This document shows, one piece after another, positions 1,457 to 43,405 of a DNA stretch of 64,000 nt (the first letter of the stretch is position 1; each line of letters begins with the position of its first letter). Made by a program: the position numbers and the translations under genes. The notes beneath the pieces were generated by a model. It did no database searches. It worked only from the letters and a program-made list of their open reading frames with translations, and was not told where the DNA came from. This DNA comes from Podarcis bocagei (lineage: Eukaryota). The stretch is from NCBI GenBank assembly GCA_964188305.1, contig OZ076895.1. One strand, given 5' to 3'.

Positions 1457-16034
<14,578 letters not shown>

Positions 16035-21354: not shown

Positions 21355-21478
21355 TTTATTTATTTATTTTGTCTTGGTTATATTTCATTAAAAAACACAA
21401 CCATTTGTATTCTTGTGTCCCATTTTTCTTGGCATATTCATATTTTATCTCTGTAGGCACAAAATCCTACTGAGAGAA

Positions 21479-21523
21479 ATGGCTGAAACCCTGGAACAAG
21501 AACCCATATATTTCTTTGACCAG
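21479..21523 (+). CDS. C3orf20-like coding exon 1
   Basis: Acceptor ctgtag before 21457; ATG in gaaATGg context; MAETLEQEPIYFFDQ|gtattt. Confidence 0.6.
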
Positions 21524-24500
21524 GTATTTCCCATCTCATATTTGATATGTTATTACTGTATTGCTCTCTCCAAATCTATTAAGGGTTTAATAAAATCCTA
21601 TATTTTATTCTAGCTCAAAACCAAACAAAAGCGAAATATGAAAATAGAACCAGGAGAACACTTTGTTGATATAAATTTAGTCAGCACAGATCCAGATCCT
21701 CATGAAATTCACAGGTAATAGTGGTGACGTATTTAAATTGCAATAACTAATTGAATGCATTAATGAATTGATATATTGTATTAAAATGTAGTCTTTCCCC
21801 CGTTTTTGTTGGTTGGAAAGTTCAAATGGGAAAACTGTTAAGGGCATATTGCAACTTGAAAATTGTTCACATTTTGTTTTTTTAAAGGATGAATAGGATG
21901 TAAAAGGGCACTATTCCAGCAGGAAGCAAGTATGTATTCTGTACTTCCTACTTACCTAAGTCCTGCTGTTCTCATAAGAATTTAAGCCTGAATACATATA
22001 TAGCTGTGTCTGAAGATTTCTGTACATAGTTATGTCTTCTTCACACCTATAGTATTTGGTCTATATCAGGGTAGTCCAACATGCAACATTTGACACCCCT
22101 CCCCCAGCCCAGTGGCAGACCTACATTTTTGAGTCCCGCTTAGTATGAAAAGTCTGTATTCTCGAATTAAAGGCATAACATACATTTACTGTCCACATGC
22201 AGGAACTCTGGATGCATGGATGAACACAGGGAAATAAATGATGCTTTTGTGAAAGACAGTAAAGCAAAGAAAGAACCAGTTTCTACTAAAACAGATGATC
22301 CTTCTATATCCATAAACATTTGTGAGAATCCTCTGGCTCGCCTCTCCCAAATACCTTCATTTCCACCTGCAGAAGAAGACCTACGGTCAACTTCACTGGA
22401 AGAACATAAATGCATGGCTGCTACCATATTATGTGAGCTGGAAGAAACGTTGACGCATTTTACCAAGTTTAAGTTTATTTTACCACAAGGGGTTTTAAAT
22501 ATATTGAGCTCCAGTTGGAAAGATCTCATTGAAGGTGTCTGGAAAAATAAAAAATATTTGCAGGAATTAGCATACAAAAACTTTAAATCAAGGAGAAGGC
22601 AAGCATCACAGGAGTCCAACAGATTGCCACCTACATTTGAATATACTGACTATGAGACGGCTAAAAATGTGAAAAGGAAAAGCAGGAAAAGTGTTGATTT
22701 TCCCATGGGTGCGACAAAAGGAATGGACAATCCTGGAGCTCTGTCAAACAGACTCAATGGAAGCAAGAGTAAGGAATTTTACTGGTTTTCCCTTAATACT
22801 TAATATTCCAGTATCATATAGCAGAGGGTGGTTCAGCTTGGCCATTATACTACAGGGGGCGACAATATTGCAAGTGTTTGTTTGGTGTGCAACTGCTGGC
22901 ACACGTTTTCAGCCCTGGAAGGAGGTGGGGAGGGCTTACATGCACTCCACCAACATGTGGGATGGCCTGGGGCAACTTTTACATATAAGAATAGGAGCAA
23001 ACTGATTGGTTTTTATCCTAATACCAAAACTCAGGGTTTACTTTGACTACTTTACTATACATTTAGCACTCAGTAGATAAAGGTCCCCGATTAGCATAAA
23101 CAGGAGTAGCTCTCATTGAGACTAATTTCAAAGTAAACCTTCAGGCTGCAAGTCTCTAACCTAATAGCATGAATAGGCAACAATGGAGAACATTAAATTC
23201 TAAGATATAGTTTGTCTTAATACATGTTTCTATACAGTGCTTTTTGCAGGGTTAAAAATTAGGTGCTGGTGCACATAAATAAAAGTATTGTGGGCAGCAA
23301 AAAGAATCATACTCTATACCAGTAAATATGACCACACAAAAAACCAGTTGTCCATCACTCGTTTAGAATGATATTTATTCTTGACACATCTAGGCTAGAG
23401 AGAAAATGCCAGCTCTGAAATTTGCTATCTTCGTCCCAGGCCACAATCACAAGTGGAAGTAAGAGATCTCTTGTGATTAATTGAGGAAAGTTGCTGAAGA
23501 ATACCAGCAAATGGCCTTTGCAGCTGAAGTTAGAGAGGTACAAGCACTTGGGGGGGGGGGGCTGGAACTGAAAATAAACTAGGCAATTTTTCAAACCATT
23601 TATTACAGAAGCTTCTCTTTCCCATTTCAAGGTGAGTGAAAAAGTAATCATAGTATTCAGCCAGGAGAGGCAATCTGTACCCAGAGCACTTCATTCAATA
23701 ATGAAAAAAGTTAACAGCACATAAGCACTTACTCTGGCCATTACCTAGCTCTTTGCAAGTTTGTAATTATAAAACAACAAACAGTTCTTAATAAAGAACT
23801 GTGATTATGTGTGCTTATACTGCTGAGGACTCATGGTCAATACTTTTCTTTTCTCTCCTATTTAGCTGCAGTCCCTCAGCAATATAGCAATGATTCACCT
23901 TTTGCAATCAGTTTCTCACTGTCATCAAAACTATGCAAGGAAAGAGGTATTATGTGTGCACTCTCTCTTTCTTCATTCAGGTTAATGTTTAGATTAATGA
24001 GCTACAGTTGGAGGGGAGCAAGCTTATTCATTTACTGTATAAGATTTCTTACCTGCCCTTCAACATAGGGCACCAGGGTGGGTTACAACATTATAATGAT
24101 ACAGTTATGAGGGTGGGATGGGGATGACAAAAGTGAAACAGCTTTAAAAAGAGGGAAAACAATATAGATTAAACAAAAGAGGTGGGTCTCACAACACAAA
24201 ATATATTAACTGTCAAAGGGGAAGGGGGAAAGGTCCATCTTTAGTGTACGACAAAGGTGATGCTAGATGCCCTCACAATCTTCCAGGCTGCCATTCCCCT
24301 TTCTTCTAGTAGGACTACCAAGAGATGATACTTGAGGAAACTATTTTTATTTTCTTTTTAGGTTAATTGGTTCTGGTGGATGAGTGTAATAGGGAATGAA
24401 AAAGAAAATATTAAAGATGGCCTTTACTTCTAACAATAACTAATACTTGTGTTTGTGTTAACAAACCGGCTTTCTTAACTTTTAAATATATATTTTTTGA

Positions 24501-27500
24501 TTAATCAAAAAATGTACTGATGTCTTGGAATTCGACAAGCACTTAAACTTTATTTATTTATTTATTTATTTATTTGCAGCATTTCAGTTAACTAATTATG
24601 AGTTTTTTCATTTCTTCATAAAGGTTGGGTTTTTCAACATTCTGACTGTGACTCTAAAGACCTAGAATGGAAAGCACCGTATGTCTGGGCAGTGGAAAGA
24701 TTACGAATGGCAAAGATTGAAATGTAATATTAAAATGGGATTTTCTATTATGGCTTTTAAAATCTATTCTTGTTAAACTGATTTTTTTCTATTTTATTAC
24801 AGGCTAAAATAACCAGAGATAGTTTAAGATGTGTTAAATTGCTAACACAGATGCTCAAAGAGGTCCATGGGAGAGTATGGAGGGCCTCTGGCGTTTTCTA
24901 ACTGGAAAAGGGTAGCATGGAGGCACTGGCTGTATGAACCAATGGCCTGAATTGGTGCTTCCAATTGGGACTCATATATGACAGCTGTTGCAGTTTTTCA
25001 TAATCAAAGCATCTTCTTTTTTAGCCACTGTGGCTGCACAAATCACACAGTGTGAAAAGTCCTCATGTGAAAGTGTTGCTTCATGCAGTTGGTGCCTTCA
25101 TGCAATCACTGTTGGGCCCAAGAGCAATCCTGTATGACCATGTGGAGCAGGGCTGGCCATACCATTAGGCAGAGTAGGGCTTTTGCCTCAGGCAGGAGGT
25201 GTTGGGAATTTGTGTGCCAAGTGGTCTTCCCTATGTTTCCTGCTTCCCTCAGGTGCAGCACAGTTTTGACATAAGAATCTACTAACAGTCCAGGCAGGTT
25301 TTGGACGTAGACTAGGGGGGCAGCATCCCCTGGTCTTTTCCCTCAGAAAGTAAAATGTCTTGGGCTAGCCTTGATGTGGAACATAAAAAAAAACATGTTG
25401 CAAAACCACATTACAGAAACTCATTTCCTTTGGGGGGGGGAATTAAATAATTGAACATTTGGTATTTGACAGGAGTGGGAAATAAATATACTTTTTTCTT
25501 AGGGATAACAACCTCAGAATCATGATGTCTGGTAATTTTTAAAAACGTCCCCAATGTAGTGCAGACTGAATTAATCCTAGCTAGTATTTTTGAAAAACAA
25601 TAACTACCGGTATATCATTTTCAGAAGTCTTTTACTTTTTTGTGCCCTGTGTTTCCCTGTACAGTTCTAAGTGAATAACTCGATTAATCTTGATGAACTG
25701 AGATCTTCTGTTAGCTATTCCTGTTTTTACACTTGTATGTTTTATATTATTATTGGAAGATTTATTTTCATCTGAGATATAATTATATAGACAAAATCTC
25801 TGCAAACCAATCCATCCCAGAGGAGGAGAGTATGTTTTCTTTTTCAGTGTTTATCACCCCTATTGGCACATAGACCTGGCGCTGAAATCCTGATCCTCAT
25901 TTTGGAAGGTACAGCGCTGACTGCTGCCAGGTTTCTGTGCCAACGCTATTGCACTTGACTTAGTGTTATTGAATGCTTATTCCTAGCCTGGTCAGCAAAA
26001 AGGTGTCCTGAGTGCTATCTTGTTGCAGAGTTTAAGGTGTAAGGAATGTTGGCTTCCAGTGAAGGGTTCTCCTTAGATTTCCTCTAATTAATATTTAGAA
26101 TTACAAGCTTCTGGAATGCTTTCCTGCTTAATTCCCGCCTTCAGTTAAAGGTTTGGATATCTGACTCTCTCAAAGTCAGCAATGTGTAATACATAGACTA
26201 TGAGAAAATTCATAGTGACATTGAAATAAAGCTGCTTGAAGGCTCGTAGAGTAAATATGTTGCCTACCAATGGAAAGGACAGTCCAGTCCAGAGCCAGTG
26301 TGGTGTAGTGGTTAAGAGCGGTAGTCTCGTAATCTGGGGGAACCGGGTTCGCGTCTCCGCTCCTCCACATGCAGCTGCTGGGTGACCTTGGGCCAGTCAC
26401 ACTTCTTTGAAGTCTCTCAGCCCCACTCACCTCACAGAGTGTTTGTTGTGGAGGAGGAAGGGAAAGGAGAATGTTAGCCGCTTTGAGACTCCTTAAAGAG
26501 AGTGAAAGGCGGGATATCAAATCCAAACTCTTCTTCTTCTTTGAATGAAGTACACATAGTAGCTTATGCAAGTCCAAGCCAAAACAATATAACCCTCACT
26601 CTCCTTCAGCACCTACAGTGAAGAAAGCTAGCTGCCCTGTTGCATTTTCCCTGTTTTGCTGGTACTGTAGCTCAGTATCTGCTAGGATACTTAAGAGCTG
26701 CAGGTGACGTGCAAGTTTCTGTGTAAAAGGGACATGGGACATGGGACAACAATTGACTCAGAAGTACTTACCACTAAGTCTGGACTGGGGTTGAGCCTTG
26801 GCACTGGTTGGTGTTCCTTTATTAATGTGCTTATTCAGAATAACAGGCAAATAATTGGTAAAGATCTTTTGAAAATAAAACCAAAAATGTAAAATGGGGA
26901 TCAAACGTAGTATAGATTAGGATGTCTGTGTTCGGAATCAGTATTAGGACTCTACCAAGTTGCCTGAGCAGAAGGCAAGTGAGTTTAGACTTGTAACTTA
27001 CATTTTATATTTAGAAAGAAAAACAGTTTAGAGTGTATTTTCAAAGCTCTTACAGGGTTTGGAGTGAACTGAACTGCTTTTTACTCAGATGAATAGAAGA
27101 CTGGTGCCTGGAATATGCTATACTACATTGCTTATTCAGATCATATAGAAAGCTGAACTTTTTCAGCCTAAATGCTAGCTATGTTGAAGACCTTATTTTA
27201 GAGAATTTCTTAGTAAATAATTGATTAAAAAAAAATCTTCCAAACAGAACTGAGCAGCTGTCTAAGCTGAAAGAATCAGGATTTGACAAGCCTATTATTC
27301 TTCGTCATTATGGTGATATGAAGACGGAAACCTTTCCCCAAAACATCAAAGGGCAGCCCAGTAAGAAAGTCTCGTCCGAGAGCCTGTATGAAAAGCCACA
27401 GTTGCCATTGATCAAACAAGCTGATCCAGCCTTAAAAAAACTGCACTATGGATTGGTTGATGGATCATCCTTCATTTAATATCCTTTGAAAGTGTAACAT

Positions 27501-30359
27501 AAAAGAGAATTCCATCTAGCAGGAATGGGAGGAAACATTCCTACAACAAAGAAAAAGCATGGATTTAAAATTACTTAATTCACTTGGCAGGTAGGAAGCA
27601 AATTTCTTTAGGATTTCTGAGTAAACGTCTTTAAGGATTGAACTGTAAAAGGTTCTAGATCACTTTACAGGAGCAAGACGTTTGGAAAAATCTGTTTCCA
27701 AATAATGGTGTGCAATTTTATGCAGGTTAAGTCTGGAATCAAAAACGTGGGGTTTTTTTTTGGGGGGGGGGACTTGCTTTAGAACCTTTTATCCAAACTG
27801 AAAAGAAGGAAAGTCGTGAGTCATGACCCAAGCATTTTTGTTCCTACACACTTGAATGTCAGATTTTTAGATTATTACCTGCTGCTGATTTGAGAAAACT
27901 CAGAAAGGACCCCTTAGCACTTGAACTTACTAAACCTCAAACTGTCTAAAGTTTTATATAGAAATAGGTCTTTGCATGTCTATATCTATCTAGCTATCTA
28001 TCCATACATCTATCTGAGCAGACAAACACCTGCCAACAGTGGTGATGTGGAAAGTCATTCATGATAGCATCCACTTTAGCACAGATAGGTCACTGCTGCT
28101 TACCACAGTGGCTGCTTATAGTTTCAAAGTTTTGAGATGGATACTTGGTAAATCCTCTGAATACGCATTGAGCAAGTTTGAGCTGCAGTCAAATGTACAG
28201 TAGACAAGAAATAGAATGAGTAATTGACAGTTGCATCACACAAGCCATTCACGCTTGTACATCCCAATACTGACTCCTCGGTGCAATTTTTAGTTCAGCT
28301 CTACATGTATTATGAGTGAGAGAAAGCAGGCACTAATATTAGAGTTGTTTCAGTCATGGCTGCATGTCGTTATTGCAGGCACCTTTTTTAGTAGTTCACT
28401 GGGTGTATCTGGTGCTATGCATCATACATACCCATCTCCCCATAGCTGTTTGGCAAGCTTTATTTTAAAATTATTTTTATAGTATTTTAAAGATTCTTCA
28501 TTATACCATAAATAGTAATGGCTTGAATGAGGACAATAAACTGAAGCTGAGTCCTGGCAAGGGAGAGGTGCTTGTGGTTTGGTAGATTCCAGATCTGGGA
28601 AACAGAAAGATGGTCTGTTCTGACTGTGGTTGGACTTCCCTAAAAGATCACCCGGTACATTTCTGAGCACAATTCAAAGTGTTGGTGCTGACTTTTAGAG
28701 CCCTAAACGGCTTCGGCCCAGTATACCTGAAGGAGCATCTCCTCCCTCCAGGTTCAGCTGGACGCTGAGATCTTGCTCTGAGCCTCTTCTGGTGGTTCTT
28801 TCACTGTGAAAAGTGAAGCTACAGGGAACCCAGTAGAGGACCTTCTCCCATCAGATGTCAAGAAGATATATAACTATACAACTTTTAGAAGACACCTGAA
28901 AGCAGCCTGTATAGGGAAGCTTTTTAATGTGTAGTGTTTTATTATGTTTTTATATATATCTTGGAAGTCAGCCAGATGGACGGGGTATAAATTATTATTA
29001 TTATTATTATTTTAAAGTGCCTTATAATTAGACACCTGGAAATGCCATATCCATCTCAGACAAACTCCTTGACTCTTTATTTACCTACCCCTCTGGACAT
29101 GTTGCAGTCTGTCAGAGTTACTCTGATCTTCCTTGTGGTGGCTTGTACACCAATATATTTAATGACTGTCCCGATCGTGCGTTAGTTGGAACATTTACTC
29201 CTTCTGGACATGGCAGCGTTTGCTTCTCTAACAGGTAAGAAGAGATGTTCCAGAGGGCTTCCTAACTAACATCAAATGTTAACCGCAGCAGGCACTGAGA
29301 GACAGTCCTTTGGCAGTACCTGCTATACTGGATGTAGGACATAATTAAAAGGCTCCCACATTGTTTCAAGCATGACTCACTCCCTCTAAAAACTAAAAGT
29401 GTGCTTCAAAAGCTTCCATTCACCCCACCCAGAACAGCACAGACATCTTAAGGTAGCAGCCAGCGCTGCTGTATCGTATATGGTGCAGTGACAGCCACTG
29501 ATCCATCAAGTTGGGCCTGGTGACCTGCATTGGTTAGCTCAAAACACTCGACACAACAAGTGAAGGTGTTGTGCTGGTGCAGCACTTCTTATATCCTTTC
29601 TTAAGAATCTTGTTTAATTTACACGGTAGTTTAGAGCTCAAGGTAGGCCATGTACCAACTTGCTGTGTGGAATCAGAGCCTTGTAGAGTTCAGGTATCCT
29701 TCTCTCAACTTATGGTGAGTTACAAGCATTCTATACACACAATTTTTTTATATCAAATAGAACGGGAAGGGAGAGCAAAGTCTGTCACACCTAGTTTAAC
29801 ACTATCAGCCTAGACTGTGCTGCGTGCCTCTGCTGATTTGTGGATCATAGCCTTAGCAGATGAAAGTGGGTTTTTTTTGCCTTGGATAAAACCACAATGG
29901 GATATAATATATATGATATATGTCATTGATTACTGTAAAGTATGCCTAGAATAAGAGCCAGTGTTAACATGGGGTTATCCAGGCACCTTCATGTTTTGCA
30001 GTTAAAAAGTAAGGGCTACGTTACGAAATAATTTTGTGACTCTCTTAAGGCTGGATTGTTCATTCACAGCCACTGTGCACACCTGTGTTGAATGCTATAT
30101 GAAAATATAGATGAAGCGATAAATATGCAAATTACTATGTTAATTAAAAGCACCAAGATCAAAGTAGACAGCTTGAGTTACTCATTATGTTTTACTAAAT
30201 GGCACCGTGAAAAACTGGCTTTTGGTTTCTGCAGCAGCAGCAGCATAGCAATGATATTTAATCAGGAAGGAGGCATGGTGACTAATAAAGATGGAGAAAT
30301 ACTACGCCAGTGGAAATGGCCTGGAGAAGGGAAGCTTGATGACCCAGTTATTATGCAGG

Positions 30360-30427
<68 letters not shown>

Positions 30428-30784: not shown

Positions 30785-30824
<40 letters not shown>

Positions 30825-33800
30825 AGCAGAAGAGAAGTGGGAAACTGCATTACTTTAAAACTGAACTGCTTTGCTCCTGTCTCTTTCTTTCCCCCTAAGG
30901 CAACATGCTTAACCTAGCACTTCTTAAACTGTCAAGAGTAGAAAAGTCATGTTTGCACTCGACCTTTCCTTACTATGATGTAAAATTTGAAGTAGAGATT
31001 AAATTTCACCCCTTTATCTGGCAACCCAACCCTATCCAATCCTGGCAACTAGCTATGCTCTGTACTTTCCACAACTATCCCGGCAACCTACATCTGGCAA
31101 GAAGTACAGAAGCCTAATTATATCTTGCAATTATATGTGCCTGATTATATCTTGCAGACACTAGTTTTTTTAAAGGGGGTGTGGTAGAGAACATGCTCTG
31201 CATGTGAAAGGTTCCAAGTAGACTTGGGTGAGAACCCTGTCTGAACTCCTAGAGAGCTACTGCCAATCAGTGTTGACAGTAATGAAGTAGATGGACTAAT
31301 GGTTTTGATGATGCAGTAGTTGACAGATTCCCATATTCCCGCAACAGCATTTCTGGGAAGGCGCCATAGCTTATTTGCACACAGAAGGCCCTAGCTTCAA
31401 TCCCTGGCACCTTCAGGTGTGCCTGGGAATTCTCCTGTCTGAAACCCCAAAGCCAGTCAAAGCAGAATAGACAATTGTGAGCTAAATGAACCAAACTGCT
31501 TTGGGGGAGGAATGGAACATCAGGTGGGAAGGGAGGTGGGATGGAGTATCCTGGAGAGGGGCACAGCACACTGAACCACCATAAACAAGATGGTGTCGCC
31601 ATAAACAAGATCTGTCTCTGGTTAGTGTCAGATTTCTCTTGTGGCTTCCTATCTTCATTTTGGCAAATTCCATAGCTGAACAATACTGTGAAGTACACAT
31701 CTCTCATGTCTTACCCTAGGTTAACAAGTGCATCACAGTGAAGGTTGCAGGACGCTTTGCTGTTGGATTGCTTTACAAGTGGCGACATGAAAGCGTGCGT
31801 TTGTCTTTGTCACCGGTACGAGGTGTGGCTGGTCCACAGTTAGAAAACCTGGTATGGTGCAATAGCTTATGATGCAAAAAAACCACACAACATGCCAATC
31901 AGGCTGGAGCCTGTAGAGAAGTTGCAGGGAGATAATAGCCCTCTGTGGTGGGTTGTGGGAGAATTTGGTTGCGAGAGGATTTGCAAGAAGTAAAATATTT
32001 GTTGCACAGTAGTTTCAAAAGGAATAACAGATAGAAGAGGGCCGTTTCCAGCTCTTGCACATACATACTGTTTCCATACAAATGGACTTTTCCATTCAGT
32101 TCAAAATCAGGATCAGCTTGACATTTAAATTCATGGGTATACTATTGGAAGCCCTACACAAATGTTAGAGTCATGGTGGATTGTGTGTATCCAGGCAAGT
32201 GCAATAGTGAGACAAATGAATATAGAGAAGACACTACATTATTTTCCCCTACATCAGGGATGGAGACTCCCAATTCCCACCAATTCCCAATATAACAAAG
32301 ACACCACAGTCTCCAGTGGCCTACAGTTTAAGGAAACCAACCATGAGTTATGTGCTGACAGCACCCCTGAAATCTCTCACTGCTCGGAGATTGGGGTGCA
32401 CATAGCAGTATTTTAAGCAGCTACCGCATCACAGCCAGGAGCCAAACAGAAATATGTTGCTGTTTGGTTACAGGTAATCACATACCAGTCACACAGAATT
32501 TAGCTTCTGCTATTTTCTGATGGGGTTATGTGCTTCATGGCTGGTAGCAATTCAACAGCAGATGCAGTTGCCAACAAAAGGTTTGCCTGTTTTGTTACTT
32601 GTCCTGTAGCTATGGGAAATTGTAGGACTCCTGCAAGAAAAATGGGTAGAAACTCAATGGACTGCATATGATTAAAGCAAATTCTGCTGTTTGTTCTCTC
32701 TTGGTTTTCTAGAGCAAGATATTCACAGAAGTTAATCTACCATCCGCATCAGTAAAAGGATTTTCTAAAACACATGGCAAAACGGAAGACACAAAAAAAT
32801 CTCTTAAAAAAGAAGTAAGCACCTGTCAGAAACTCAATATTAAAATAAGTAAATGTAATTTTATTTTCACACTGCTACAGCTTACTTTTTTCTAACATTT
32901 CCTCTTTCTTTGCCCATCCACTAGGATACTGTAACAGCAGCGTATTTTGCTACAATTTATTTTCATTATGCTGATTTAACACCATAAAACTTGTATGCAA
33001 AACGCCCCTTCAGCTAATGAAACTTTGATTCCTTATTTCACAATAACGTAGGAACACGTTTTGACAAACCCAATAGAAATGAAAGGCAGATGTACAATAT
33101 TTGCAGCTGTTTACTGGAATCTTGGGTGCCACAAAAAGATTCCACATATCTGCAAATGCAGAAAGGAAGACTGAATAAATATAAATAAGAGGGCGGGGAG
33201 ATAACTGAGGATGGAAAGAAGGGGAAAGGGCAGAAGCAAAGGGGACCACAAGGCAGAAGAAGCAGGGGCCAAGGCAAAGGAAATAAGAGTTGAAGCCGGC
33301 CAAAATAGTTGCCTACTGGTCTACTGGTCATGTCTATGGCTTTGTACATATTCCTCCCATTTGATGGTTTGTACTTTGATGAACTGAAAGGAGAAGGGAA
33401 GGATGAAGCAGGCAGATTAGGAGATAACGTATGGGAAAAGCAGAAGCTGAGGTGGGATCAAGTGGAGGCAATAGAATAGAACAGACATATAGGCCAAGAG
33501 AGCAGAAAGTAGAACAAAGCAGCTGAGAATAAAGAAGAGAATACCTGCCACAGAAAGGATCACACAGGATTGCCTTTTTGTTATGTATTATTTATGTGCC
33601 ATCATATTTATACCCTGCCTTTCCTCCATGGAGATAAAGGTGGTGTACATAATTCTCCCCCTCACCATATTATCCTTGCAACGCCTCTGTAAGGTAGGTT
33701 AGGATGAGAGACAGTGACTCCCAGCAAGTTTCATGGCTAAGTAGAGATTGGAACCCTGGCCTCCCAGGTCTGACACTCTAACCACTATGGCACACTGTTC

Positions 33801-36800
33801 AGTTTGAGGTGCCAGGTTCAGACTGCTTTGCTGGAACCTTTATTTAGTTTTATCTTCTGGGAATGTTTGTACCAGCCATTCTATTTTTATCTGGTCCCTG
33901 ATTACTTTTACTGTTTTTTCTTTGTTGTGCTACTCATAATTTGATCTGATTGCTGATAAAAAAAATTACCACAGGAGAGAATACCTAGAATTTCAGAAGG
34001 GGATCTAAGCCATGTCAAAGACTACAACCCTACCAGAGAATTAAAAGCGCTGAGATGTAAAATCAAGAATGTCCTAGAAGACTGGATGGAATATTACCGG
34101 ATAGCCTTAGGTCAGTCTTTAATTTAGTAGCATAAGTATTGGAGGAGGATGCTAACACTTCTAAATTCAGAGGACTGAAATAAGTAATGACATGGTTTAT
34201 ATTTTTGGTGTCAGATATTTAAATATATTTAAAAATTATAATCAGTATGTATAGACTAAACATTACAGTTCATCTGCATTTGTATCTGTTAATGTGATAT
34301 TAACCTAACAGCTGCATCTGCTTTGCAAAAAGGGAGTATGAAATCACTTAATGAAATTATATATTGCTTTATCTTTTTTTACATTTTTTATTTGAAAGGT
34401 ACACTTTCCTATAAAAATTGATTCCACATTTCATTAGTTTGTTTGCAGGGTATGCTTTGAGATCGGACTTTTGGTACTAATTATTTTCATTTATGTATGC
34501 ATGAAAATACATCACATAAAGTCATGTGTGATTGATAAAAAAAACCCATATGATATATCTATACATTTGTGAACTAAGCCAGTATTCTGTGTGTGATTTC
34601 ATTTCCCTTAGTTCCAGAGCCTATTGCATGACAGGAGAAACAGGAATATTTCCTGATCCTGCATCTCCAGGATACTCACCATATACAGTATAGCAGAAGA
34701 ATACTTTGTGTTCTTAACTTGGGTTTGAGCTGACCATTGGTCATGCTGCCTAGGGCTAATGGGAATTGGATCCAACAACATCTGGAATGTGAAAAGTTCA
34801 CCATCACTAGACTGGAAGATAAGAACTGGTACAATTTCTCTACACCAAAGAGGTGAAGCGCTGGTGGAAGCTTGAGCCTAGGGGAAGCATAGAAGCAGAG
34901 TGCAATGTGGTCTATGAACATTATCTTTCCTTTGGCCAACGTTTTATTGGAAGCAAACATCTTGCTTGATCCAAATGTGATGTTAATCTTCCTAGCTATT
35001 TTCAAAGTGCTTCCTCTTCGCAGTACAGAAACACTAAGCGTTATAAATAATATAAATTAACATTTGGTTGCAATTATTTCTTAAGTGTATAAAAAGGTAT
35101 TTTATACTCTTAACTTCTTAAAGCAGTATTTCCTGGAAGTTGTATCGAATGGGAAGGACTCCACTTGAAGGGGACATTTTGCTTTGCACTTTCAGTTCTT
35201 GTGATGTGCAGTTGTCAACCAAATTCCACATGCATCTAAGTCAGCTGTCTTATATGTGAGCTTAAGGCCTTTTTAAAGTTTGTTGCCTTGGTGGTGTATT
35301 GTTGCATTTCAGAAATCAGCTCACCACACACACACAGAACCTCAGCCTTCCCTCGGATTGCTGGCAGACGGTGCAAAACACAACATGTGGATGATTTCCT
35401 TGGCTTTCATACAGCACAGGGAAAAGAGAATGACAGGGAGACAGAGACCCCTACACCAGGCAACCACCCTCCTTTCCAGGCTGTTCCGTCTTGCGGCCCC
35501 ACTCAAGGTGTGTCACCTGGTTCTTACAGGTAAAAGCACAAGAAGTCAAATGCCTACAAACTCCCTTTGCAATGGAGAGTAAATACTTCACCATTCTGTG
35601 AATATATGGAGGAATTTGATGTAGTACTATGACGACCCTTCCTTCAGTGCAAGCATTTCAGTTTGCCAGATGGAACAATTCCCCCCTCTCCTCTGCCTGC
35701 AAGCTGTTCTGGGAGTTCTCCTGACATACACACACCCAAGGCAATTTGGCAGGGTGCATGCAGGGACCAAGGAAAAGCCTCATTGTGGATAAATTTCCCA
35801 ATTTTCTCAGAATATTACCTTTCTTTTATTAAAGTTAATTTTAAAACTTTGTGCTGGGTAAATGAAAATAAATTGAGAAAATATTCCAGATGTAAAATGT
35901 TGCAATACTGTATTAATTCTTTTTTGAAGCAATGGGTTTGGTTTCCAAATCCTCTTAATTAAGATAGGTGCTAGCTAAATATTGGGTCATGAATCAACCA
36001 CAGCACACATAAGCTCAACTGATAAATCACCAGAGAGGAGTGGGAACAACTTCCTTTATACTGGGATCTTATACTGCTCTGATTAAGTGCTTTAGGAATT
36101 CTAATGTGCTGAATATGCAGCGTGTACCTACTAAAACGATACTGCAGAGGTGCAGAATCAGTTGCACCCTGTACGCTGAATTTCAGCTTCCATCATCTTT
36201 GAATATTGACCATGTTGGCTGGGGATGATGGGACTTGGAATCCAACAACTTCTGGAGGGACAGAGGTTCCCCACATATGCTGCATTGTATGAAACAACCA
36301 TTAGAAATGGGTCTACATTGCATATCAGTGTAAATATCAGCAGAGATACCTTGGAATTGCAGAAAAACCGTGAAGTGTGTTTGTTTTCTCTTGCAGAGAC
36401 CCTCATTTATTGAGCAGCATTTTCAGAACAAATAAACCGCCCATGGCTCACCTTAATGTAAACAATGACACACTCCAAACCTCTCACAAAGCAAAGTAAG
36501 TAAAACTAAGTACCATTTACTATGTTCTTTGAAGACTTACTAAGATTCTTTAAATGCCATTTATATTATTTGGAGCATATGTTTCAAGAATGACACAAAT
36601 ACATATTCAGGTGATTTTACAGTATTTTTACTTTGGAGAAGTAAGGAAAATATGACAATTAGATCAATTTAGAATAGCTTTGCATTATGTATATGATATA
36701 TTTATTATTCTATTTATTATATCTTCCACTTTTCCTGCAAGGAGTAAAGGGGAACATACATGGTTCTGTACCCTCCAACAATAATTCATCTTTGTAAAAT

Positions 36801-39800
36801 AGACTAGAATTTAGCTGCTTGCAATCCAGTGGCCTTAATTTTACTACGTTTACTTGGATTGGATTTCTGAAGTTGCAATCTGCAACTAGGAATGTGAAGA
36901 AAGCAGTCCTTTTCCTCTGCAGCAAGCGACCAACATTTCCTTACATTTGTAATGTTATCATTGTTAACAATGCTAGGTTCAGTTCTGGTAGCCTTGGAAG
37001 CAAGTTGTTCTTGTTTTTCCACAGAAATAAGCATTTGTGTCTTACACACTTCAGGACCTTACCACTATTTATTCTTGCCCGAATTTTGTTTGAAGCTGTC
37101 TTCAGAAGTTGTTCAGCCAGTTTATCCACACAAAGAGCATCTGCTAGAGTTTTCTTTATACTAGTTTGGCTCATTCTTCTGCTCTGGAGGATCAGAAAGA
37201 GCATCAAAGTGCTGTGGACACGGTTATACCTTTAGAAAACCATGGATTTCAGCTAAAGTCAGGACTCTGGGTTTATTTGTAGAATAATGCAAGGAGAAAA
37301 GAAGTGTGGGCAAGGAGATTGAGCGGGTGGTCGCTGAGCAACTCCAGGCATGCCTGGAGGATGCGGACCATTTAGGTCCCTTCCATTCGGGATTTAGGCC
37401 TCATCATGGGACTAAAACTGCCTTGGTCGTGCTGGTCGATGATCTCTGGTGGGCCACGGACTGAGGTGAAGAACAAAATATTGTTAGTCTCTTTGCAATG
37501 TTAATTAAATGAATAACTAAACAGAAGAGCTATGGTTCGTGACAAAATGTTGGATAGCCCTCAAGGAAATAGCTGATCCCAAAAGGCACATTAAGAAGTT
37601 GTAGAGAAAAAGCATCATGATGATAAAAACAATTTTGGACAGAGATATGATTTTGCAGCAGCCTTTTGAATTACCTGGGAAACAGAGAGACTTTGTTTGG
37701 TAGATCAAGTAAGTGTAAGCTGGTTAAAGTTTTGTTACTTCAGTTCATTCACACTCCAACTTACGCTCCTTTTACCACTGCTTTCTCATGACAGTGAAAA
37801 GGCATCCACTGCATCACACAGTGCCTGCCCTGTAGTCCTTCGAAGAACGATGCTGGGAGATGAAGTGAGGATATGCAGATGCAGCAACCATCAGATTCCA
37901 TATGTTACAGACCTGGAATATGATCACATTATCAACAACCAGATGTCTTCCTCAGAGCAGATCACTGTGGTCTGTGTGACTACTTCATTGAGAGCGGCAG
38001 ATTACGACCTCAGAACAGATAAGCACCTAGAACAGCTCTATGAGAGAAAGAACAAGAACAGGAGTATGCCATGTACACAGGTAGGGCTCTCGGGTGTTGT
38101 CTCAATCGCATCAGTGACCTGGTTCACCTGTTAACACTCAGCCAAGCTATGGCTAAGCATGAACACACAAAAACTGCAGGTGCCTCACTGTCCTGCTGGC
38201 ATGCTAGCCAGAGCTAAACCGTGGGTGGCTTAGTGTTACGTCCAAACCTAGGTTTATGGTTTGTCTTGCTCCAAACAAACTATGAGCTGTAACCAACGTT
38301 TGTTCTTGGTTTGTTCCCCAGACAAACCATGATCCCAAGTTTGGATGTAAAGTTAAGTGAAAGCATGATTTAGGTCCCAGTAGCATGGCATTAGCAGGAA
38401 ATGGGGAGGGATATTTTCCTGTGAGTACCCACATGCTTGCTTGTTCACACTTAGCCATGGTATAACTTAGTGTTGCATTTGAACTGGGCCGATGACTGAT
38501 GTAAAAGCAAGAAGATTTTGAATAACATCTTGGTGTGAAAAAATTGCTTCATTTTATTGACTTCTTACAAGTACAGAGAAATTGGGTTGTTGACATAGGA
38601 GTTTAATGCCACAAGACGTCCTTTTATATCGTTTGTGGATTGGGGTATAAGTCTAGGGTTGTCATATGACCTCTTTTTCCAGAACACGTCCTCTTTTTCA
38701 TGGGTATGTAAAATGAGTCGTTATAGCGATCCATGGTTAAAAGTAGAAGTTGGCAAATGTGTCCTCTTTTTTGCTCTTCAAAATATGACAGCCCTAAGAT
38801 GGGTGAGCTTTTTCAGAACATGAATGCTATTGCTGTTTCCCTATACACACTAGATCTAAATTAACAGTAGTGCCCCCCCCTTTTTTTGGTAAGGTGGGAG
38901 TACATCAGAGGGACATTCTGACAATTAGGCATGTCCATCACTAAGTTAAATGTACTTGGGCCACTTGCCAATGTGAGCAGTAAATAGCTGAATAATTCAA
39001 TTCCTTTAATGCTGACTTGTTCAATGGGAACATTGTGCTCTGACATCTGGTAGAATAAGATTTATTATTGCTATTGTTGACCTAGTCTTATAATGATGCT
39101 GTCTTTGTTTTTGTAGGGTCGTCTGGACTCTTTTCGCCTGCTCAAATACGATCTTGGGTCTGCAGATGAGTTTACAGGCCACTGTGGATCACTACTGGTG
39201 AAAAGGCATAATATTGCTCCTGGCATGTTTTTGGTAGGTTATAACCTTCCTGTCGCACATCCAGGTCATTTCAACTCATACCGAGAAAATGGCTTCCAGA
39301 TCCTATGGCTGGAGTCTACTTCTTGTGTTCTTCGTTCAAGAAAAGTCCATTCCCCATTTCATAGCAAATGGCGATGCAGCACAAAGACAATGCTGACATC
39401 TTCCTCTTGTCCATTGGGATCAGTGCCATCACAATAATTGGAACATAAGGATGATTGGTTTCGTTCTGCAGAATAGTGAAAGATATGGCACTGACTGGAA
39501 AAAGACATAAAATTCCAGTTTCTCCCTCAGAGGGGTCTAGTAAGAGCAACTGCTCAAGTTTCTGATCTGAGAACTAAGGGAAATATCTCTTTTCTCTCAC
39601 TGTTTTAGATAGATGGGTAAAGGGAGAGATGAAAGCACTATAGTGAATCGGCCTATAATTTGTTCTCAGCAAATGATATGAACTCTAGAAAGGTGACTCC
39701 TCCACCTTATTTTCTGAATGTGGAGCCTAACCGAAGCAAGAACGAAATAGCTGGCATGATCCCTTCCCAATGCAAGGGACATGTTTGAAATACAGTGGTA

Positions 39801-42800
39801 CCTCAGGTTACCTACGCTTCAGGTTACATACGCTTTAGGTTACAGTCTCCGCTAACCCAGAAATAGTACCTCAGGTTAAGAACTTTGCTTCAGGATGAGA
39901 ACAGAAATTGCGCAGCGGCCGCGCGGTGGCGGGGGGAGGCCCCATTAGTTAAAGTGGTGCTTCAGGTTAAGAACAGTTTCAGGTTAAGAATGGACCTCCA
40001 GAACGAATTAAGTTCTTAACCCGAGGTACCACTGTACTCTGTTACAATGAATGTAGGACAAATACTTCCCAGGACTGAGAGTAAGGTTTATTCTTCCTGG
40101 CGTAACTGGATCTCTTCTCCATGACTCTCCCTGGTTACTAATGAGCACTTATTCCATTGGGCACTATATGCCTGTATCCAGTAAGTAGTGTATACCTGCT
40201 CTTCCAGAAGCAAATAAATAAATAAATAAATAAATGAGTGCATTGGACTCACCTGAAGGGTATTTTTACATACTAGCATCTTGGATTCCTGTCCAAGAAG
40301 CAAGCAAGCAAGCAAGCAAAATATCTCTGTAACTTCTAAATTTGTCCAGCAGAGGGCCCCTGTCCACCTACGTCTAGACTAATCTAATCTATAAAATGAG
40401 ATTTCCCTTCCATTTTAATCTGTTGCAACTACTTCCTATTTGTGAATTACATCAGTTACTGAACCACTACAGTTGACTCCTCCTCAATTTCAACCCAGTG
40501 AGGAAGGAGGTCTCATAAAATATATGGTTTTCCAGGGTTATCATGCATGTTTGTGCAAACTGGGGAGCACGAGTTAAAAAAAAGAAAAATTACGTGAAAA
40601 CAATTGTCACAAGCTGCAGAGCCGAAGCTAAATTTATAGAATCCTAGCCTATCTGCTGGAGCTTGTTCCCAAGTAAGCATGCAAATAATTTTGTATAATG
40701 AATATAGCTTAGTCTTTACAAACTGACAAATACCAAGGTTAGCAAGTGTTATATTTTATAATAATCTTTGATGGTTGTTGTCAGGGCTGCTTCCAGATCC
40801 TAGCTCACAGAGGATCACGCTAGCCAGCGTTCACTTTATAAAAGTCTTTATTGAGTTACAGTTTCCAATTTCAAACTGCCGCATGCAGCCCTACGTCTTA
40901 TCAGCTAGACCGGCGAAGCTCCGTCTGAGTCCCCGCCTCCTGTACACCAACTTAATAACCTCGCCTTACCCCACCTTTTCCGCCTTCCCCTCCTTCTCTG
41001 GGTCCCTCTGCCCCCCGTGGTCTCTTCCTTCCTGGACTCTTCTGACGCTGACCCCCCGGACCCTTCTGTCTCCTTGCGGCGGGCTTTAGGACCTGGCTCC
41101 CTTTCCGGGCTGCTTACTCTGCCGCCTTCCTGTGCATTTGAACTTGGCGCGCGCGCCCAACCTCCCACTTTCCGCTTGACCGTTCCTTCGCTCCCCGATG
41201 GAGGTGTGGCCACTCCTGACTCATGCCCTCCCCCCTGCGGCGAGCCACCGGATCCCGATACCTGGCGCCCTTCCTCCCCACTGCGCTCTGTTGGGGACGT
41301 TGGCCCCGATTTCCAACTGCTGCTCTCTGAACCCCCTTTTGTCCCTTTTTCCTGGGGTGTCCCCTTAATCTCCCCCCTCGCTCTGGCCACTGGAGCTCCT
41401 TTCTGTGAATCTTCCGATTCACTGGAAAGACTCGGAGATCTCGGGTCGTCGTCATCGCTCATCTTTCCTTCGGACTCCTCCCCCTCGCTCTCTGTTTCCT
41501 CCCTTGCCCTCGCCTCTGCTCCTGAACCCCTGACAGTTGTGAATAAAATGTGTCATGAAAGAGCAGGAATATAGTGTTATCTGTCTTCTGGTTTGTGCAC
41601 AGTCTCTTCAAGTTTGGCTTACCTGAATCAATTACCTTAACTGACGAAAGGCCTATAAGAATGACCTTTTGCACTTGATTGCTTTTTCCCAATCAACTGT
41701 CAAAGTAGGCCAGTTGTTTCCCTTGGTGTTAGTTGAGAATATAGGAAGCTGCCTTTACAGAGTCAGACCACTGATGCGCCTGGCTCAGTATTCTGGCAGC
41801 AGCTCTCCAGGCTTCCAGACAGGGGTCTGTCCCAACCGAACTGAAGATACCAGGGACTGGCCCTTGGGCTTTTTGCCTGCAAAATATGCACTCTGCCACT
41901 GAGCTATGACCCTTCTTCTAGAATGCTTGGCTGCCTCTTTTTATGCAGGTAAGGAAACATTCTCCCCAAACTGTGCTACGTTAGGATAAAAGAAATCCTT
42001 GAAACTATCCCATAGAAGTGATCAACCCAAACATTATTCAAGGTACCTGTTTCAGTTTCCTCAGCTTTTACATTTCGATTAAAACACTCTCTAGAGGGCA
42101 ATATCAAAAGCTTTCAGGACTCCTTTGTTTGAGAGGGTTTCCATAAATGCAGACCTGAATCTCCCCAGGCTGCCCCACATTTGACAATCCTGCGCATATC
42201 TACTCAGAAGCAAGCCCCATCACCTGTACTCAGACAAATGGGTTACAGACCTGAAGCAGAAGGTGTCTCTTTCTGCAAGCTGGCTGAGAAACTTGCCTAG
42301 CCTGGAGCATGAAACATACAATTGGCTAAAAACAGCAAATCTTAATGAGCTGGATTACTGGCCTGCCACTAAACAAAATGAACTACCCCAGGAGCAAGAT
42401 GGCAAACGCCTAGCTGAAAACAGTTGATCTAAAAAGGTTAACGATGTCTTGCAGGTGACAAGCTAAACATTAGTTCATACTACAATACAGAAGAATGCCA
42501 GTGATGGAGCCACCCTAGCCAAGGTTTAGAAGGTGCTGGGTCTCTCCAGTGCTGAGGAAAACTGTGATATTGTATTTAGTTCTGAGCAGTCAGTTCAGCA
42601 GGTGAGCAGGATGACTCATGATGGTGTGATATGGCCTGCTAATGAATTAAAAATTGGTAACGCGGCTCCAGACAAAACTGTGTCCCATTCTCCTGTATGT
42701 CTCCTCAAAGGCAGCTTTTGCATTCTACTTACAGGCTGATGTTTTATGTATTTTTGACAGATGTACATTCAAGGAAAGCTGCTCTTTGCCAACTACATTT

Positions 42801-42903
42801 TCAATGGATACAGCAAATCAGTGAAAGATCTTCAAAAGCAGATTGCCCTGACAAGGAACAATTACAACAGGGGCTACTACTTACCCCCTGATTATAGACT
42901 GAG
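21479..42903 (+). CDS. C3orf20-like / FAM194-domain protein, at least 16 coding exons, about 890 aa; final exon uncertain
   Basis: Exons 21479-21523, 21614-21714, 22203-22768, 23866-23946, 24624-24723, 27248-27478, 29085-29234, 30235-30358, 31720-31851, 32713-32814, 33975-34110, 35313-35529, 36397-36495, 37795-38080, 39117-39233 and 42761-42903 join into a stop-free 2630-nt frame. Motifs PQGVLNILSSSWKDLI, ISFSLSSKLCKERGW, DGSSFIYYPSGHVAVCQ, NVLEDWMEYYRIAL, ACPVVLRR, DSFRLLKYD and MYIQGKLLFANYIFNGY...GYYLPPDY resemble C3orf20/ERICH6-family proteins as recalled. Confidence 0.85.
21614..21714 (+). CDS. C3orf20-like coding exon 2
   Basis: ttctag|LKTKQKRNMKIEPGEHFVDINLVSTDPDPHEIH|gtaata; phase fits both neighbours. 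Confidence 0.65.
22203..22768 (+). CDS. C3orf20-like coding exon 3
   Basis: Large exon within ORF 22216-22803, containing PQGVLNILSSSWKDLIEG; cag / gtaagg. Confidence 0.85.
23866..23946 (+). CDS. C3orf20-like coding exon 4
   Basis: AVPQQYSNDSPFAISFSLSSKLCKER; tag / gtatta. Confidence 0.8.
24624..24723 (+). CDS. C3orf20-like coding exon 5
   Basis: GWVFQHSDCDSKDLEWKAPYVWAVERLRMAKIE; aag / gtaata. Confidence 0.8.
26291..26541 (+). mobile_element. tRNA-derived SINE
   Basis: A-box tggtgtagtggtt, B-box-like ggttcgcgtct, tail ctcttcttcttctt; same family as 21030-21275. Confidence 0.85.
27248..27478 (+). CDS. C3orf20-like coding exon 6 (ends at U12 donor)
   Basis: TEQLSKLKESGFDKPIILRHYGD...LHYGLVDGSSFI; followed by ATATCCTTT. 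Confidence 0.85.
27479..29084 (+). other. U12-type AT-AC intron
   Basis: 5' ATATCCTTT; branch TCCTTGAC at 29066-29073; AC 3' end; splicing restores FIYYPSG. Confidence 0.9.
28666..29011 (+). mobile_element. L2/CR1-group LINE 3' end
   Basis: Degenerate QFKVLVLTFRALNGFGPVYLKE-like coding remnant ending in a (TTA)n tail. Confidence 0.7.
29085..29234 (+). CDS. C3orf20-like coding exon 7 (after U12 acceptor)
   Basis: tccttgac...ttac|YPSGHVAVCQSYSDLPCGGLYTNIFNDCPDRALVGTFTPSGHGSVCFSN|gtaaga. Confidence 0.87.
30235..30358 (+). CDS. C3orf20-like coding exon 8
   Basis: SSSIAMIFNQEGGMVTNKDGEILRQWKWPGEGKLDDPVIMQ|gtaata. Confidence 0.85.
30362..30421. repeat. (AT)n microsatellite
   Basis: About 30 units directly after the exon donor. 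Confidence 0.95.
30785..30825. repeat. (TAA)n microsatellite
   Basis: Direct reading. Confidence 0.9.
31720..31851 (+). CDS. C3orf20-like coding exon 9
   Basis: VNKCITVKVAGRFAVGLLYKWRHESVRLSLSPVRGVAGPQLENL; tag / gtatgg. Confidence 0.83.
32713..32814 (+). CDS. C3orf20-like coding exon 10
   Basis: Strong polypyrimidine tract and tag; SKIFTEVNLPSASVKGFSKTHGKTEDTKKSLKKE|gtaagc; phase 0-0. Confidence 0.7.
33975..34110 (+). CDS. C3orf20-like coding exon 11
   Basis: ERIPRISEGDLSHVKDYNPTRELKALRCKIKNVLEDWMEYYRIAL|gtcagt; acceptor is weak. Confidence 0.8.
35313..35529 (+). CDS. C3orf20-like coding exon 12
   Basis: ISSPHTHRTSAFPRIAGRR...VSPGSY|gtaaaa; phase 1-2 fits. Confidence 0.7.
36397..36495 (+). 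CDS. C3orf20-like coding exon 13
   Basis: ttgcag|DPHLLSSIFRTNKPPMAHLNVNNDTLQTSHKA|gtaagt; phase 2-2. Confidence 0.65.
37309..37470 (+). mobile_element. L2/CR1-group reverse transcriptase fragment
   Basis: GKEIERVVAEQLQACLEDADHLGPFHSGFRPHHGTKTALVVLVDDL resembles the RT motif LDPFQSGFRPxHxTETAL. Confidence 0.75.
37795..38080 (+). CDS. C3orf20-like coding exon 14
   Basis: EKASTASHSACPVVLRRTMLGDEVRICRCSNHQIPYVTDLEYD...LYERKNKNRSMPCTQ|gtaggg. Confidence 0.88.
39117..39233 (+). CDS. C3orf20-like coding exon 15
   Basis: GRLDSFRLLKYDLGSADEFTGHCGSLLVKRHNIAPGMFL; tag / gtaggt. Confidence 0.88.
39793..40034. mobile_element. Tc1/mariner (Tigger-like) MITE
   Basis: TIRs cagtggtacctc / gaggtaccactg, TA on both sides. 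Confidence 0.85.
40779..41535 (-). mobile_element. Solo LTR (757 bp), probably Gypsy-like, young
   Basis: tgtcaggg...ccctgaca termini; 5-bp TSD gttgt at 40774-40778 and 41536-41540; AATAAA on minus strand at 40847-40852; CpG-rich. Confidence 0.85.
42761..42903 (+). CDS. C3orf20-like coding exon 16
   Basis: gacag|MYIQGKLLFANYIFNGYSKSVKDLQKQIALTRNNYNRGYYLPPDYRL|gtattt. Confidence 0.88.
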
Positions 42904-43356
42904 GTATTTTACTCTGTGTAGACATACCTGTGATACATGGCTTTAAATGTGGTTTGTTGCAGCCCATCATAATAGATAATTTGGTAGATCATATTATGAC
43001 ATTTTCACAGAGCGGAGGAAGTTTGAAGTTGTTTCGGTTTTTTCTGGTGTTAGGATTCAAAGTTTTAATTAATAGGTTAAAAATCCACAGTAGTTGTTTA
43101 ATTGGTGTGTGTGTGTGGAGCTAAAATACAGCACACCAATTAAAATTTAAGGGCACATGGTTTTAAAGGCTACTTTAGTATTAATGAGCTATGTAATATT
43201 CTTGAGATCTTCCATGTGCTGTCAGGTGAGATGCTCCTAGTCAGGCAAGCTAACCCCCAAAATCATTGCCAAAGAAATGGGTAAAACTTAGCCCTGCGTC
43301 TTAGCCCTGTATTGATTCAGCTTTTTCTTATACGACCTTGCACCCTGCTTACACAG

Positions 43357-43405
43357 TGTGGATGGCCATTGCCCGAAGCTCAGCTCCATCCATGTTCCCA
43401 TCTAA
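43357..43405 (+). CDS. Candidate terminal coding exon of the C3orf20-like gene
   Basis: Pyrimidine-rich tract and acacag|, in phase, giving (S)VDGHCPKLSSIHVPI*; an alternative in-phase acceptor lies at about 47356. Confidence 0.35.

Follow-up and report, generated by a model that had tools for sequence, protein, structure and literature searches.

A FAM194-type gene between METAP2 and VEZT in Podarcis bocagei: probably an old single-copy animal gene and most likely a paralogue of human C3orf20

The 64,000-nt stretch of Podarcis bocagei DNA analysed here (the window; no runs of N) is occupied by three genes, METAP2 on the minus strand, a gene of the FAM194 family on the plus strand and VEZT on the minus strand. 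The question raised by this locus is whether the FAM194 gene is the lizard counterpart of human C3orf20 or a different member of the same family. A first-pass annotation had described it as an intact gene of 16 exons and ~890 amino acids (aa) at 21479–43405, a probable ohnologue of C3orf20 that was kept in reptiles and lost in the human lineage. With a probability of roughly 85%, the window gene is the lizard version of an ancient animal gene present in single copy, which forms one orthologue group from coral to many mammals. It has been kept between METAP2 and VEZT since at least the bony-vertebrate ancestor, and it and human C3orf20 are most likely paralogues. It is an old vertebrate gene, not a reptile novelty or a relic.

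Members of the group were sought by word-filtered protein searches, which can miss relatives, and by cluster look-ups. One gene per species was found in lizards, turtles, crocodilians and birds, and equally in frogs, a salamander, caecilians, lungfish, sturgeons, gar, teleosts and two corals. Mammalian members come from echidna, bats, carnivores, ruminants, mole, hedgehog, elephant, tree shrew and two strepsirrhine primates, and from cricetid, geomyoid and hystricognath rodents; no marsupial member was found by these searches and look-ups. Given orthologues in corals, gar, lungfish, amphibians, sauropsids and many mammals, calling the gene kept in reptiles understates its range by far. The gene itself is ordinary, being already annotated in RefSeq for the sister species Podarcis muralis (LOC114605895) and in dozens of vertebrate species under the names 'C3orf20 homolog' or 'C3orf20-like' or a LOC number. 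Further entries from the genus are P. raffonei LOC128422670 and a P. lilfordi 'hypothetical predicted protein' (P0001). The proteins named 'C3orf20 homolog' or 'C3orf20-like', from gar to rodents, belong to the same length class as the lizard protein and share its layout of a FAM194 and a thioredoxin-fold domain and, where examined, its neighbours. They differ from it in sequence (36–59% identity) and in their tails, which are lineage-specific after ..LP.DFRFS, and the placental members have changed much faster.

In the window, METAP2 with its Pfam Peptidase_M24 match stands head-to-head with the FAM194 gene, and VEZT with its Pfam Vezatin match stands tail-to-tail with it. These flanks, together with the stop-free 933-aa model described below, bear out the earlier claim that an intact gene of the FAM194/C3orf20 type lies there. 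Searches by tblastn with METAP2 and VEZT exons taken from the window confirmed the neighbours in other species. The METAP2(−)/gene(+) head-to-head arrangement was found in gar, Myotis davidii and alligator, and the gene(+)/VEZT(−) tail-to-tail arrangement in Tupaia, echidna and chinchilla. The METAP2 exons are 85–100% identical to Peptidase_M24 genes at the bat and gar loci, and the VEZT exons match the Vezatin genes of the Tupaia and echidna loci. No neighbour genes were found within 10 kb of the Mustela, Rhinophrynus and Microtus loci, and the Nycticebus locus has only an hnRNPA1-like retrocopy upstream.

A maximum-likelihood tree of 24 rows follows the species tree, with the amniotes, mammals included, supported at 99/100. 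In a coral-rooted maximum-likelihood tree of 30 rows, ray-finned fish, lungfish, amphibians and amniotes are all placed as expected. Within the amniotes, sauropsids are sister to mammals, in which echidna branches first, and the window protein stands beside that of P. muralis; support is 100/100 for squamates and 99–100 for amniotes. A tree with the mammals forced outside amphibians and sauropsids was rejected (log-likelihood difference 21.9; approximately unbiased test, p 0.02). The 24-row tree had been taken to prove a 1:1 relation to C3orf20 of mammals. This reading was dropped, as the mammalian rows are VEZT–METAP2 genes and no anthropoid or murid is included.

Branch lengths in the 30-row tree are uneven. 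The placental stem carries 0.85 changes per site, compared with 0.13–0.37 for other stems, and the genes of rodents have changed even more quickly (chinchilla 0.78, hamster 0.55).

The gene model was obtained by locating stop-free stretches by eye, followed by phmmer with the large exon stretch 22216–22800 and tblastn of P0001, with exon borders set by splice signal and phase. The phmmer search with the exon-3 stretch gave 21 matches, the best of which (E value 7e-106, 92% identity) was the 920-aa P0001 of P. lilfordi, and tblastn of this protein against the window recovered every exon of the model. The gene lies on the plus strand, and its 18 coding exons join into a frame of 2802 nt for 933 aa that is free of internal stops. 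Over 931 residues, U12 junction included, the model is 96% identical to the RefSeq protein of P. muralis (P0022, 960 aa), whose 18 coding exons agree with those of the window, the U12 junction and the two terminal exons among them. All introns are bordered by GT-AG, save one AT-AC intron at 27479–29084.

Coding exon 1 (21457–21523; acceptor 21456/21457) contributes 45 coding nt from the ATG at 21479 on the plus strand (MAETLEQEPIYFFDQ). It is followed by exon 2 (21614–21714, 101 nt), placed by AG/GT borders, phase and tblastn to P0001, and by exon 3 (22203–22768, 566 nt; tblastn and phmmer), which encodes the N-terminal helical region. Exons 4 (23866–23946) and 5 (24624–24723) were placed by tblastn, splice signals and the RefSeq match, as were exons 10 (32713–32814) and 13 (36397–36495). 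Exon 6 (27248–27478; tblastn and splice signals) ends in ..DGSSFI plus TA, the start of the FAM194 domain, and is whole in the P. muralis RefSeq model. Exon 7 (29085–29234) encodes the FAM194 core (YPSGHVAVCQSYSDLP..) and matches Pfam PF14977 over profile positions 28–73 (32 bits, E value 1e-7). Exon 8 (30235–30358), also FAM194, matches profile positions 77–102 (19.4 bits, E value 7e-4), and exon 9 (31720–31851), again FAM194, is 100% identical to P0001. Exons 11 (33975–34110), with the conserved helix ..ELK.LR.KIKN.L.DW.EYYR.., and 12 (35313–35529), a poorly conserved linker, are supported by tblastn, splice signals and the family alignment. The thioredoxin-fold domain starts in exon 14 (37795–38080; tblastn, RefSeq match, domain model) and continues in exon 15 (39117–39233; tblastn, RefSeq match, structure comparison). 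Exon 16 (42761–42903; MYIQGKLLFANYIFNGYS..), placed by tblastn, the RefSeq match and a contig of run X1, is where the portion conserved throughout the animals ends.

The acceptor of exon 8 lies in a CAG repeat, which gives a 3-nt NAGNAG ambiguity (start 30235 or 30238) and one Ser more or less than P0022; as modelled, the window protein has one Ser more. A (TA)n microsatellite (30359–30420) begins directly at the donor of the same exon (CAG|gtaatatatatat..). P0022 also differs in beginning 28 residues earlier, at an ATG that is absent from the window, where the codon is AAA. In the P. lilfordi model P0001, exon 6 lacks its portion ahead of the U12 intron, and another N-terminus is added.

The transcription unit extends beyond 21479–43405 on both sides. 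Upstream, a probable first exon of the 5' untranslated region (UTR) lies on the plus strand at 16454–16501 (borders approximate; 94% tblastn identity to P0001 residues 2–17; GTGAGT donor after it), and a probable second one at 18453–18481 (start approximate; weak tblastn match to P0001 residues 17–29; donor CTAAG|GTACGT). Since TAT stands in the window in place of the P0001 ATG, the 16454–16501 exon is non-coding here. The region 15401–16700 beside the first exon of METAP2 has a G+C fraction of 0.59 and a CpG observed/expected ratio of 0.78.

At the other end, the first-pass frame of 16 phase-consistent, stop-free exons holds for coding exons 1–16 (21479–42903), on splice signals, tblastn and the RefSeq match, but not for its terminal exon running to 43405. 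The tail encoded by that exon (43321–43405, plus strand; acceptors 43321, 43357 or 43384; TAA at 43403–43405) is found in no homologue, and read depth is 0 at 43022–43504 in four runs, so that this candidate was rejected. The reading frame instead proceeds to exon 17 (46825–46917), which encodes a lizard-type tail (SSLENSLQSYPEHTQ..) and is supported by tblastn, the RefSeq match and a junction in both a contig and a read, and to exon 18 (47356–47434; tblastn, splice signals, RefSeq match), a Podarcis-specific tail with its TGA at 47432–47434. These two exons bring the protein from the ~890 aa first proposed to 933 aa. The continuation follows from the identity to the P. muralis RefSeq protein, from the exon-17 tail SSLENSLQ.., which is common to Anolis and Varanus, and from the GT..AG joint 42903|46825. 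This joint occurs in one assembled contig (run X1), which spans 42760–42901, covers exon 16 from its first base and then jumps to 46823, and in one raw RNA-seq read (X24); the reads used are from a related species and mostly 90–95% alike.

The very low RNA depth over the gene in two raw RNA-seq runs and the lineage-specific nature of its last two exons might suggest a decaying, non-functional remnant, or an artefact of stitched open frames. Such a frame would have to retain 2802 stop-free nt over 18 exons whose splice signals are sound, a protein 96% identical to that of a congener, a C-terminal domain 49% identical to that of coral, conserved U12 signals and a spliced contig, and we regard this explanation as hardly credible.

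The 933-aa protein consists of a helical N-terminal part, a central FAM194 domain, a variable linker and a C-terminal thioredoxin-fold domain. Alignment of 11, then of 30-odd, members revealed three conserved blocks, namely an N-terminal motif (GPIYFFDQ, kept from coral to mammals), FAM194 and the C-terminal ~180 residues. Assignment to FAM194, as first proposed, is confirmed by Pfam PF14977 (cut-off 27 bits), which exon 7 of the window passes alone with 32 bits and P0022 with 96 bits (E value 2.4e-27, residues 387–542). The C-terminal block is the best conserved of the three, with 49% identity to coral versus 28–29% for FAM194.

AlphaFold models were built on the family alignments. The C-terminal model (predicted local distance difference test score, pLDDT, 79; predicted template modelling score 0.78) has the β-α-β-α-β-α-β-β-α core of the thioredoxin fold. 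It superimposes on thioredoxins with Z 10–10.8 and a root-mean-square deviation of 2.2–2.5 Å over 102–110 residues, the targets having ~105 residues, and 404 chains match it at Z ≥ 8. No C..C occurs anywhere in the 933-aa protein, and the consensus at the place of the catalytic site is VVCVxSSL. The absence of CxxC indicates a redox-inactive thioredoxin-like module. As modelled, the domain thus has a thioredoxin fold without being a catalytic thioredoxin; it was previously unannotated, so that the best conserved part of the family is a domain missing from its annotation and lacking redox cysteines. By our own comparison, a conserved Pro before the fourth strand (..NVAPGMFLMY..) may be the equivalent of the cis-Pro of thioredoxin. 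The fold is also like that of DIM1/TXNL4A (U5-15kD), a known redox-inactive module that likewise lacks CxxC (Z 9.8–10.0; Foldseek E values 1.8e-4 to 5e-4 for DIM1-type chains). However, such modules share only 10–16% sequence identity with the domain, with no Pfam or PDB sequence match, and the module here is the tail of a 930-aa protein; the likeness in fold is no evidence for a role in splicing.

The model of the FAM194 block (pLDDT 72, core >85) is a run of β-hairpins forming a single-layer sheet. Its likeness to the CPAP G-box/TCP10 domain (Z 6.7), OspA (≤6.7), junctophilin (5.9) and MORN4 (4.9) is weak, with Z values in the range of chance, and Foldseek gave no match at E ≤ 0.001. The block is assigned to none of the CPAP G-box, OspA, junctophilin or MORN4 types. 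A PDB sequence search with the family profile returned nothing at E ≤ 1, and a search of the ESM Atlas for look-alikes of exons 3 and 14 gave nothing usable.

The AT-AC intron at 27479–29084 (plus strand) splits a Tyr codon, TA|C, within FIYYPSG. It is of the U12 type, with the donor /ATATCCTT (in the window ATATCCTTT), a TCCTTRAC branch site within 10–15 nt of the 3' end (TCCTTGAC, its A located 12 nt before the AC at 29083–29084) and the terminal AC. Splicing over 27478|29085 is suggested by the conserved protein rather than by reads. Eight other species (gar, Rhinophrynus, Myotis, Tupaia, Microtus, echidna, Nycticebus and alligator) have a [AG]TATCCTT donor at this codon, which makes nine with the window, and the donor alternates among them between AT and GT. 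In human C3orf20 and mouse 4930590J08Rik, a U12 intron also splits a Tyr codon TA|..|C (TOGA2 preprint; Sheth et al. 2006), with different ends, namely GT-AG in human and AT-AG in mouse as compared with AT-AC in the window gene. The intron common to both at the same Tyr codon shows that the window-type gene and C3orf20 are related by descent.

Gene models of other species are often broken at this intron. In echidna, an upstream 260-aa 'gene' (L006:5011-9975) stops exactly at the U12 donor at 9975, and the 'C3orf20 homolog' (10001-47933) begins after it. Separate N- and C-terminal half-genes are annotated in Microtus, Xenopus, Pipistrellus, Lerista and bullfrog (broken-model loci include L005:2117-5074 and 10001-43935). 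The 'USP44' model of Myotis davidii (L003:10001-91401) ends at the U12 donor at 91401 and is a chimera of USP44 and the first exons of the FAM194 gene, joined across METAP2. The conserved U12 intron leads annotation pipelines to split or mis-join the gene in several genomes.

Human C3orf20 and mouse 4930590J08Rik are similar in length to the window protein and, by database naming, fall in the same Pfam family as the window gene. C3orf20 adjoins FGD5 on 3p (PMC4139850), and the mouse gene is treated as its orthologue (TOGA2 preprint). The window gene, positioned between METAP2 and VEZT, does not share this FGD5-side location, and the loci differ as the first-pass annotation had stated. A profile of five placental members gave 82 matches reaching echidna, fish and coral; no ape, monkey, mouse or rat protein was among them in this word-filtered search. 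True orthologues from any of these would match the profile at ~55–70% identity, and so would have been found. The proposed loss in the human lineage fits this result of a protein search.

No chromosome-3-type C3orf20 sequence was returned by any of the protein searches, the human type being divergent enough that no member surfaced. The same searches gave no second Podarcis protein, which is weak evidence against a second lizard copy beside FGD5. No literature was found that names a 'CxxH3orf20' of cattle, dog, pig, horse or sheep, which would place both loci in one species. ERICH6 (FAM194A) and ERICH6B (FAM194B) share the family PF14977, and neither surfaced here; they are reported to be only ~20% similar to each other (PMC7436996).

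With one gene in every sampled species, a tree that equals the species tree and many members named 'C3orf20 homolog' by NCBI, the window gene might be viewed as the plain 1:1 orthologue of human C3orf20, moved from between VEZT and METAP2 to the FGD5 side on the way to humans. However, human and mouse share the FGD5-side locus (TOGA2 preprint, PMC4139850), whereas chinchilla, a rodent like the mouse, keeps the VEZT/METAP2 locus together with tree shrew, bat and echidna, so that one move is insufficient, and the expected orthologues of apes, monkeys, mouse and rat were not found by the word-filtered placental profile. A simple relocation is therefore very unlikely, and the earlier preference for paralogy over relocation stands. 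Both loci must have been present side by side by the time of the rodent–primate ancestor at the latest.

FGD5 and FGD6, as well as NR2C1 and NR2C2, are paralogue pairs. The two FAM194-type genes may be ohnologues, products of the two vertebrate genome duplications within the FGD6–NR2C1 and FGD5–NR2C2 blocks, of which the chromosome-3 type was kept only in mammals and the VEZT–METAP2 type nearly everywhere, with loss toward humans. Both genes lie upstream of an FGD5/6-type gene: C3orf20 is next to FGD5 on 3p (PMC4139850), the order NR2C1–FGD6–VEZT–..–METAP2 is known from dog and chicken (PMC13332154, PMC6339939), and the FAM194 gene lies between VEZT and METAP2 in that NR2C1–FGD6 block, as seen at the Tupaia, echidna and chinchilla loci. 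Common descent is indicated by the U12 intron that splits the same Tyr codon (TA|..|C) in both genes, and the coral members show that the gene is older than vertebrates and was thus present for duplication. The chromosome-3 type is also very divergent, given that the placental profile reached coral, salmon and goby, yet no mammalian C3orf20. On the other hand, no non-mammalian chromosome-3-type gene was seen, which would require separate losses in ray-finned fish, lungfish, amphibians and sauropsids. The plain name 'C3orf20' given by NCBI to the Anolis and Xenopus members suggests that no better candidate exists there, the FGD5/FGD6 and NR2C1/NR2C2 paralogy enters as background, and no tree holds both gene types. 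We therefore propose the ohnologue origin only tentatively, at slightly less than even odds.

Alternatively, chromosome-3 C3orf20 could be a younger, fast-changing DNA-level duplicate from the mammalian, perhaps therian, stem, which made the older VEZT–METAP2 copy dispensable and led to its loss in some mammals. The chromosome-3 type is known here only from mammals, and the VEZT–METAP2 gene speeds up in the placental stem (0.85 versus 0.13–0.37) and is then missing in anthropoids and murids, as would be expected of a redundant copy; the common U12 intron and the plain 'C3orf20' naming in Anolis and Xenopus agree with this origin as well. It would, however, be a striking coincidence for such a copy to land directly upstream of FGD5, the paralogue of the locus neighbour FGD6. 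Moreover, a copy of ~170–200 million years should share words with the placental members, as the echidna, fish and coral proteins did, and the placental profile found no C3orf20 proper. A young duplicate is thus unlikely, and other or mixed histories take up what probability remains.

Under the ohnologue origin, which we hold no more firmly than stated above, a slow, coral-like copy stayed at VEZT–METAP2 and was lost in anthropoids and in mice and rats, a fast copy on the FGD5 side is found only in mammals, and the vertebrate 'C3orf20 homolog' would be the ancient sister of C3orf20. In outline, the first-pass proposal of a paralogue that humans lack is probably correct; the ohnologue part of it is unproven.

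Several points tell against this account of the gene. Paralogy rests on gene positions, two papers and the absence of anthropoid and murid matches in a miss-prone word-filtered search, and the apparent lack of a VEZT–METAP2 copy in human and mouse comes from a protein search, not from DNA. Evidence for splicing exists but is slender: that runs X1 and X5 are RNA is a guess, and 42903|46825 is crossed by a single raw RNA read. The two probable 5'UTR exons near the METAP2 CpG island were read from the P. lilfordi model, not from reads, and a bidirectional CpG-island promoter shared by METAP2 and the FAM194 gene, though plausible, comes from the same gene model of another species. Any role in germ cells or cilia is carried over from the paralogue and from a weak fold likeness (Z <8).

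No catalytic motif is present in the FAM194 or the thioredoxin-fold domain. A repeat sheet and an inactive thioredoxin-like module, conserved from coral to mammals without a catalytic motif, would suit a non-enzymatic scaffold or adaptor, with the β-sheet and the thioredoxin-like module serving as binding surfaces. By analogy, such a scaffold could act in male germ cells or ciliated cells, although we rate the odds as being against it. Human C3orf20 is listed as reproductive-tract specific, and the mouse knockout of the International Mouse Phenotyping Consortium as male-infertile (PMC7054227); ERICH6 is listed as testis-specific (PMC7436996). A bird 'C3orf20', probably the VEZT–METAP2 gene, was seen in brain transcripts (PMC11439032).

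The 'C3orf20 homolog' proteins of non-mammals and of many mammals sit at VEZT–METAP2 and not at the human FGD5 locus. Orthology tables and the transfer of function, including the testis specificity and the knockout infertility of the chromosome-3 gene, may thus rest on hidden paralogy. If the two genes are indeed ohnologues, the male-infertile mouse knockout concerns a different gene from that of birds, reptiles, frogs and fish.

In the slow loris copy (L007:10001-82817), annotated with only 552 aa, the exons are intact as far as residue 658 of the tree-shrew protein. The thioredoxin-fold exons of the loris copy are absent from the 10 kb downstream, which is too little to call decay. It could represent an early stage of the anthropoid loss, or merely a long intron.

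Low-scoring phmmer matches (P0012–P0021) were considered as chromosome-3-type genes and all proved to be fragments of the FAM194 gene from various animals. The Joint Genome Institute metagenome proteins P0016 and P0132 correspond to the exon-3 part of the FAM194 gene of a mammal, being ~50% identical to those of cat and tree shrew, and are presumably host DNA in the metagenome.

The METAP2 gene of the window occupies ~1460–16067 on the minus strand, as judged by pieces of open reading frame and the Peptidase_M24 match at 5567–5851, with its C-terminus at ~1460 and its N-terminus, MAAVEERG.. with a poly-Lys run, at ~16067. VEZT, also on the minus strand, extends from 49362 to 64000 and past the window edge, with the Vezatin match (82 bits) at 54872–55204. 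Contigs of two runs cover the whole of 43596–47500 at an even depth of ~10, and raw RNA reads there have mostly the first mate on the plus strand. This continuous coverage and the strand of the first mates fit a long minus-strand 3'UTR of VEZT, which may extend back to ~43600, antisense over exons 17 and 18 of the FAM194 gene; its extent is inferred, and the runs could include DNA. Within this region, the segment 44336–44376 has a depth of >1000 in contigs and of 40–70 in raw RNA reads. Its ends are loose on either side and it has an opposite-strand joint, features that suggest a fragment of a transcribed repeat in high copy number.

Intron 15 contains a G+C- and CpG-rich segment (40905–41574) with Ser/Pro/Gly-rich open frames of 185 aa on the minus and 221 aa on the plus strand. 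Neither these long frames (40905–41571, both strands) nor the frame at 45775–45957 gave a Pfam match, and no second copy of them was found inside the window. A CpG island, a promoter inside the gene or an ancient insertion could each account for the segment. Two families of short interspersed repeats recur in the window as pseudo-peptides (the first with ..RLQRSVTGPRSPSSCMWRS..), at 21025–21168 and 26176–26577 on the minus strand and also at 4493–4762, 7110–7325 and 53239–53625; the second of the two families looks tRNA-derived.

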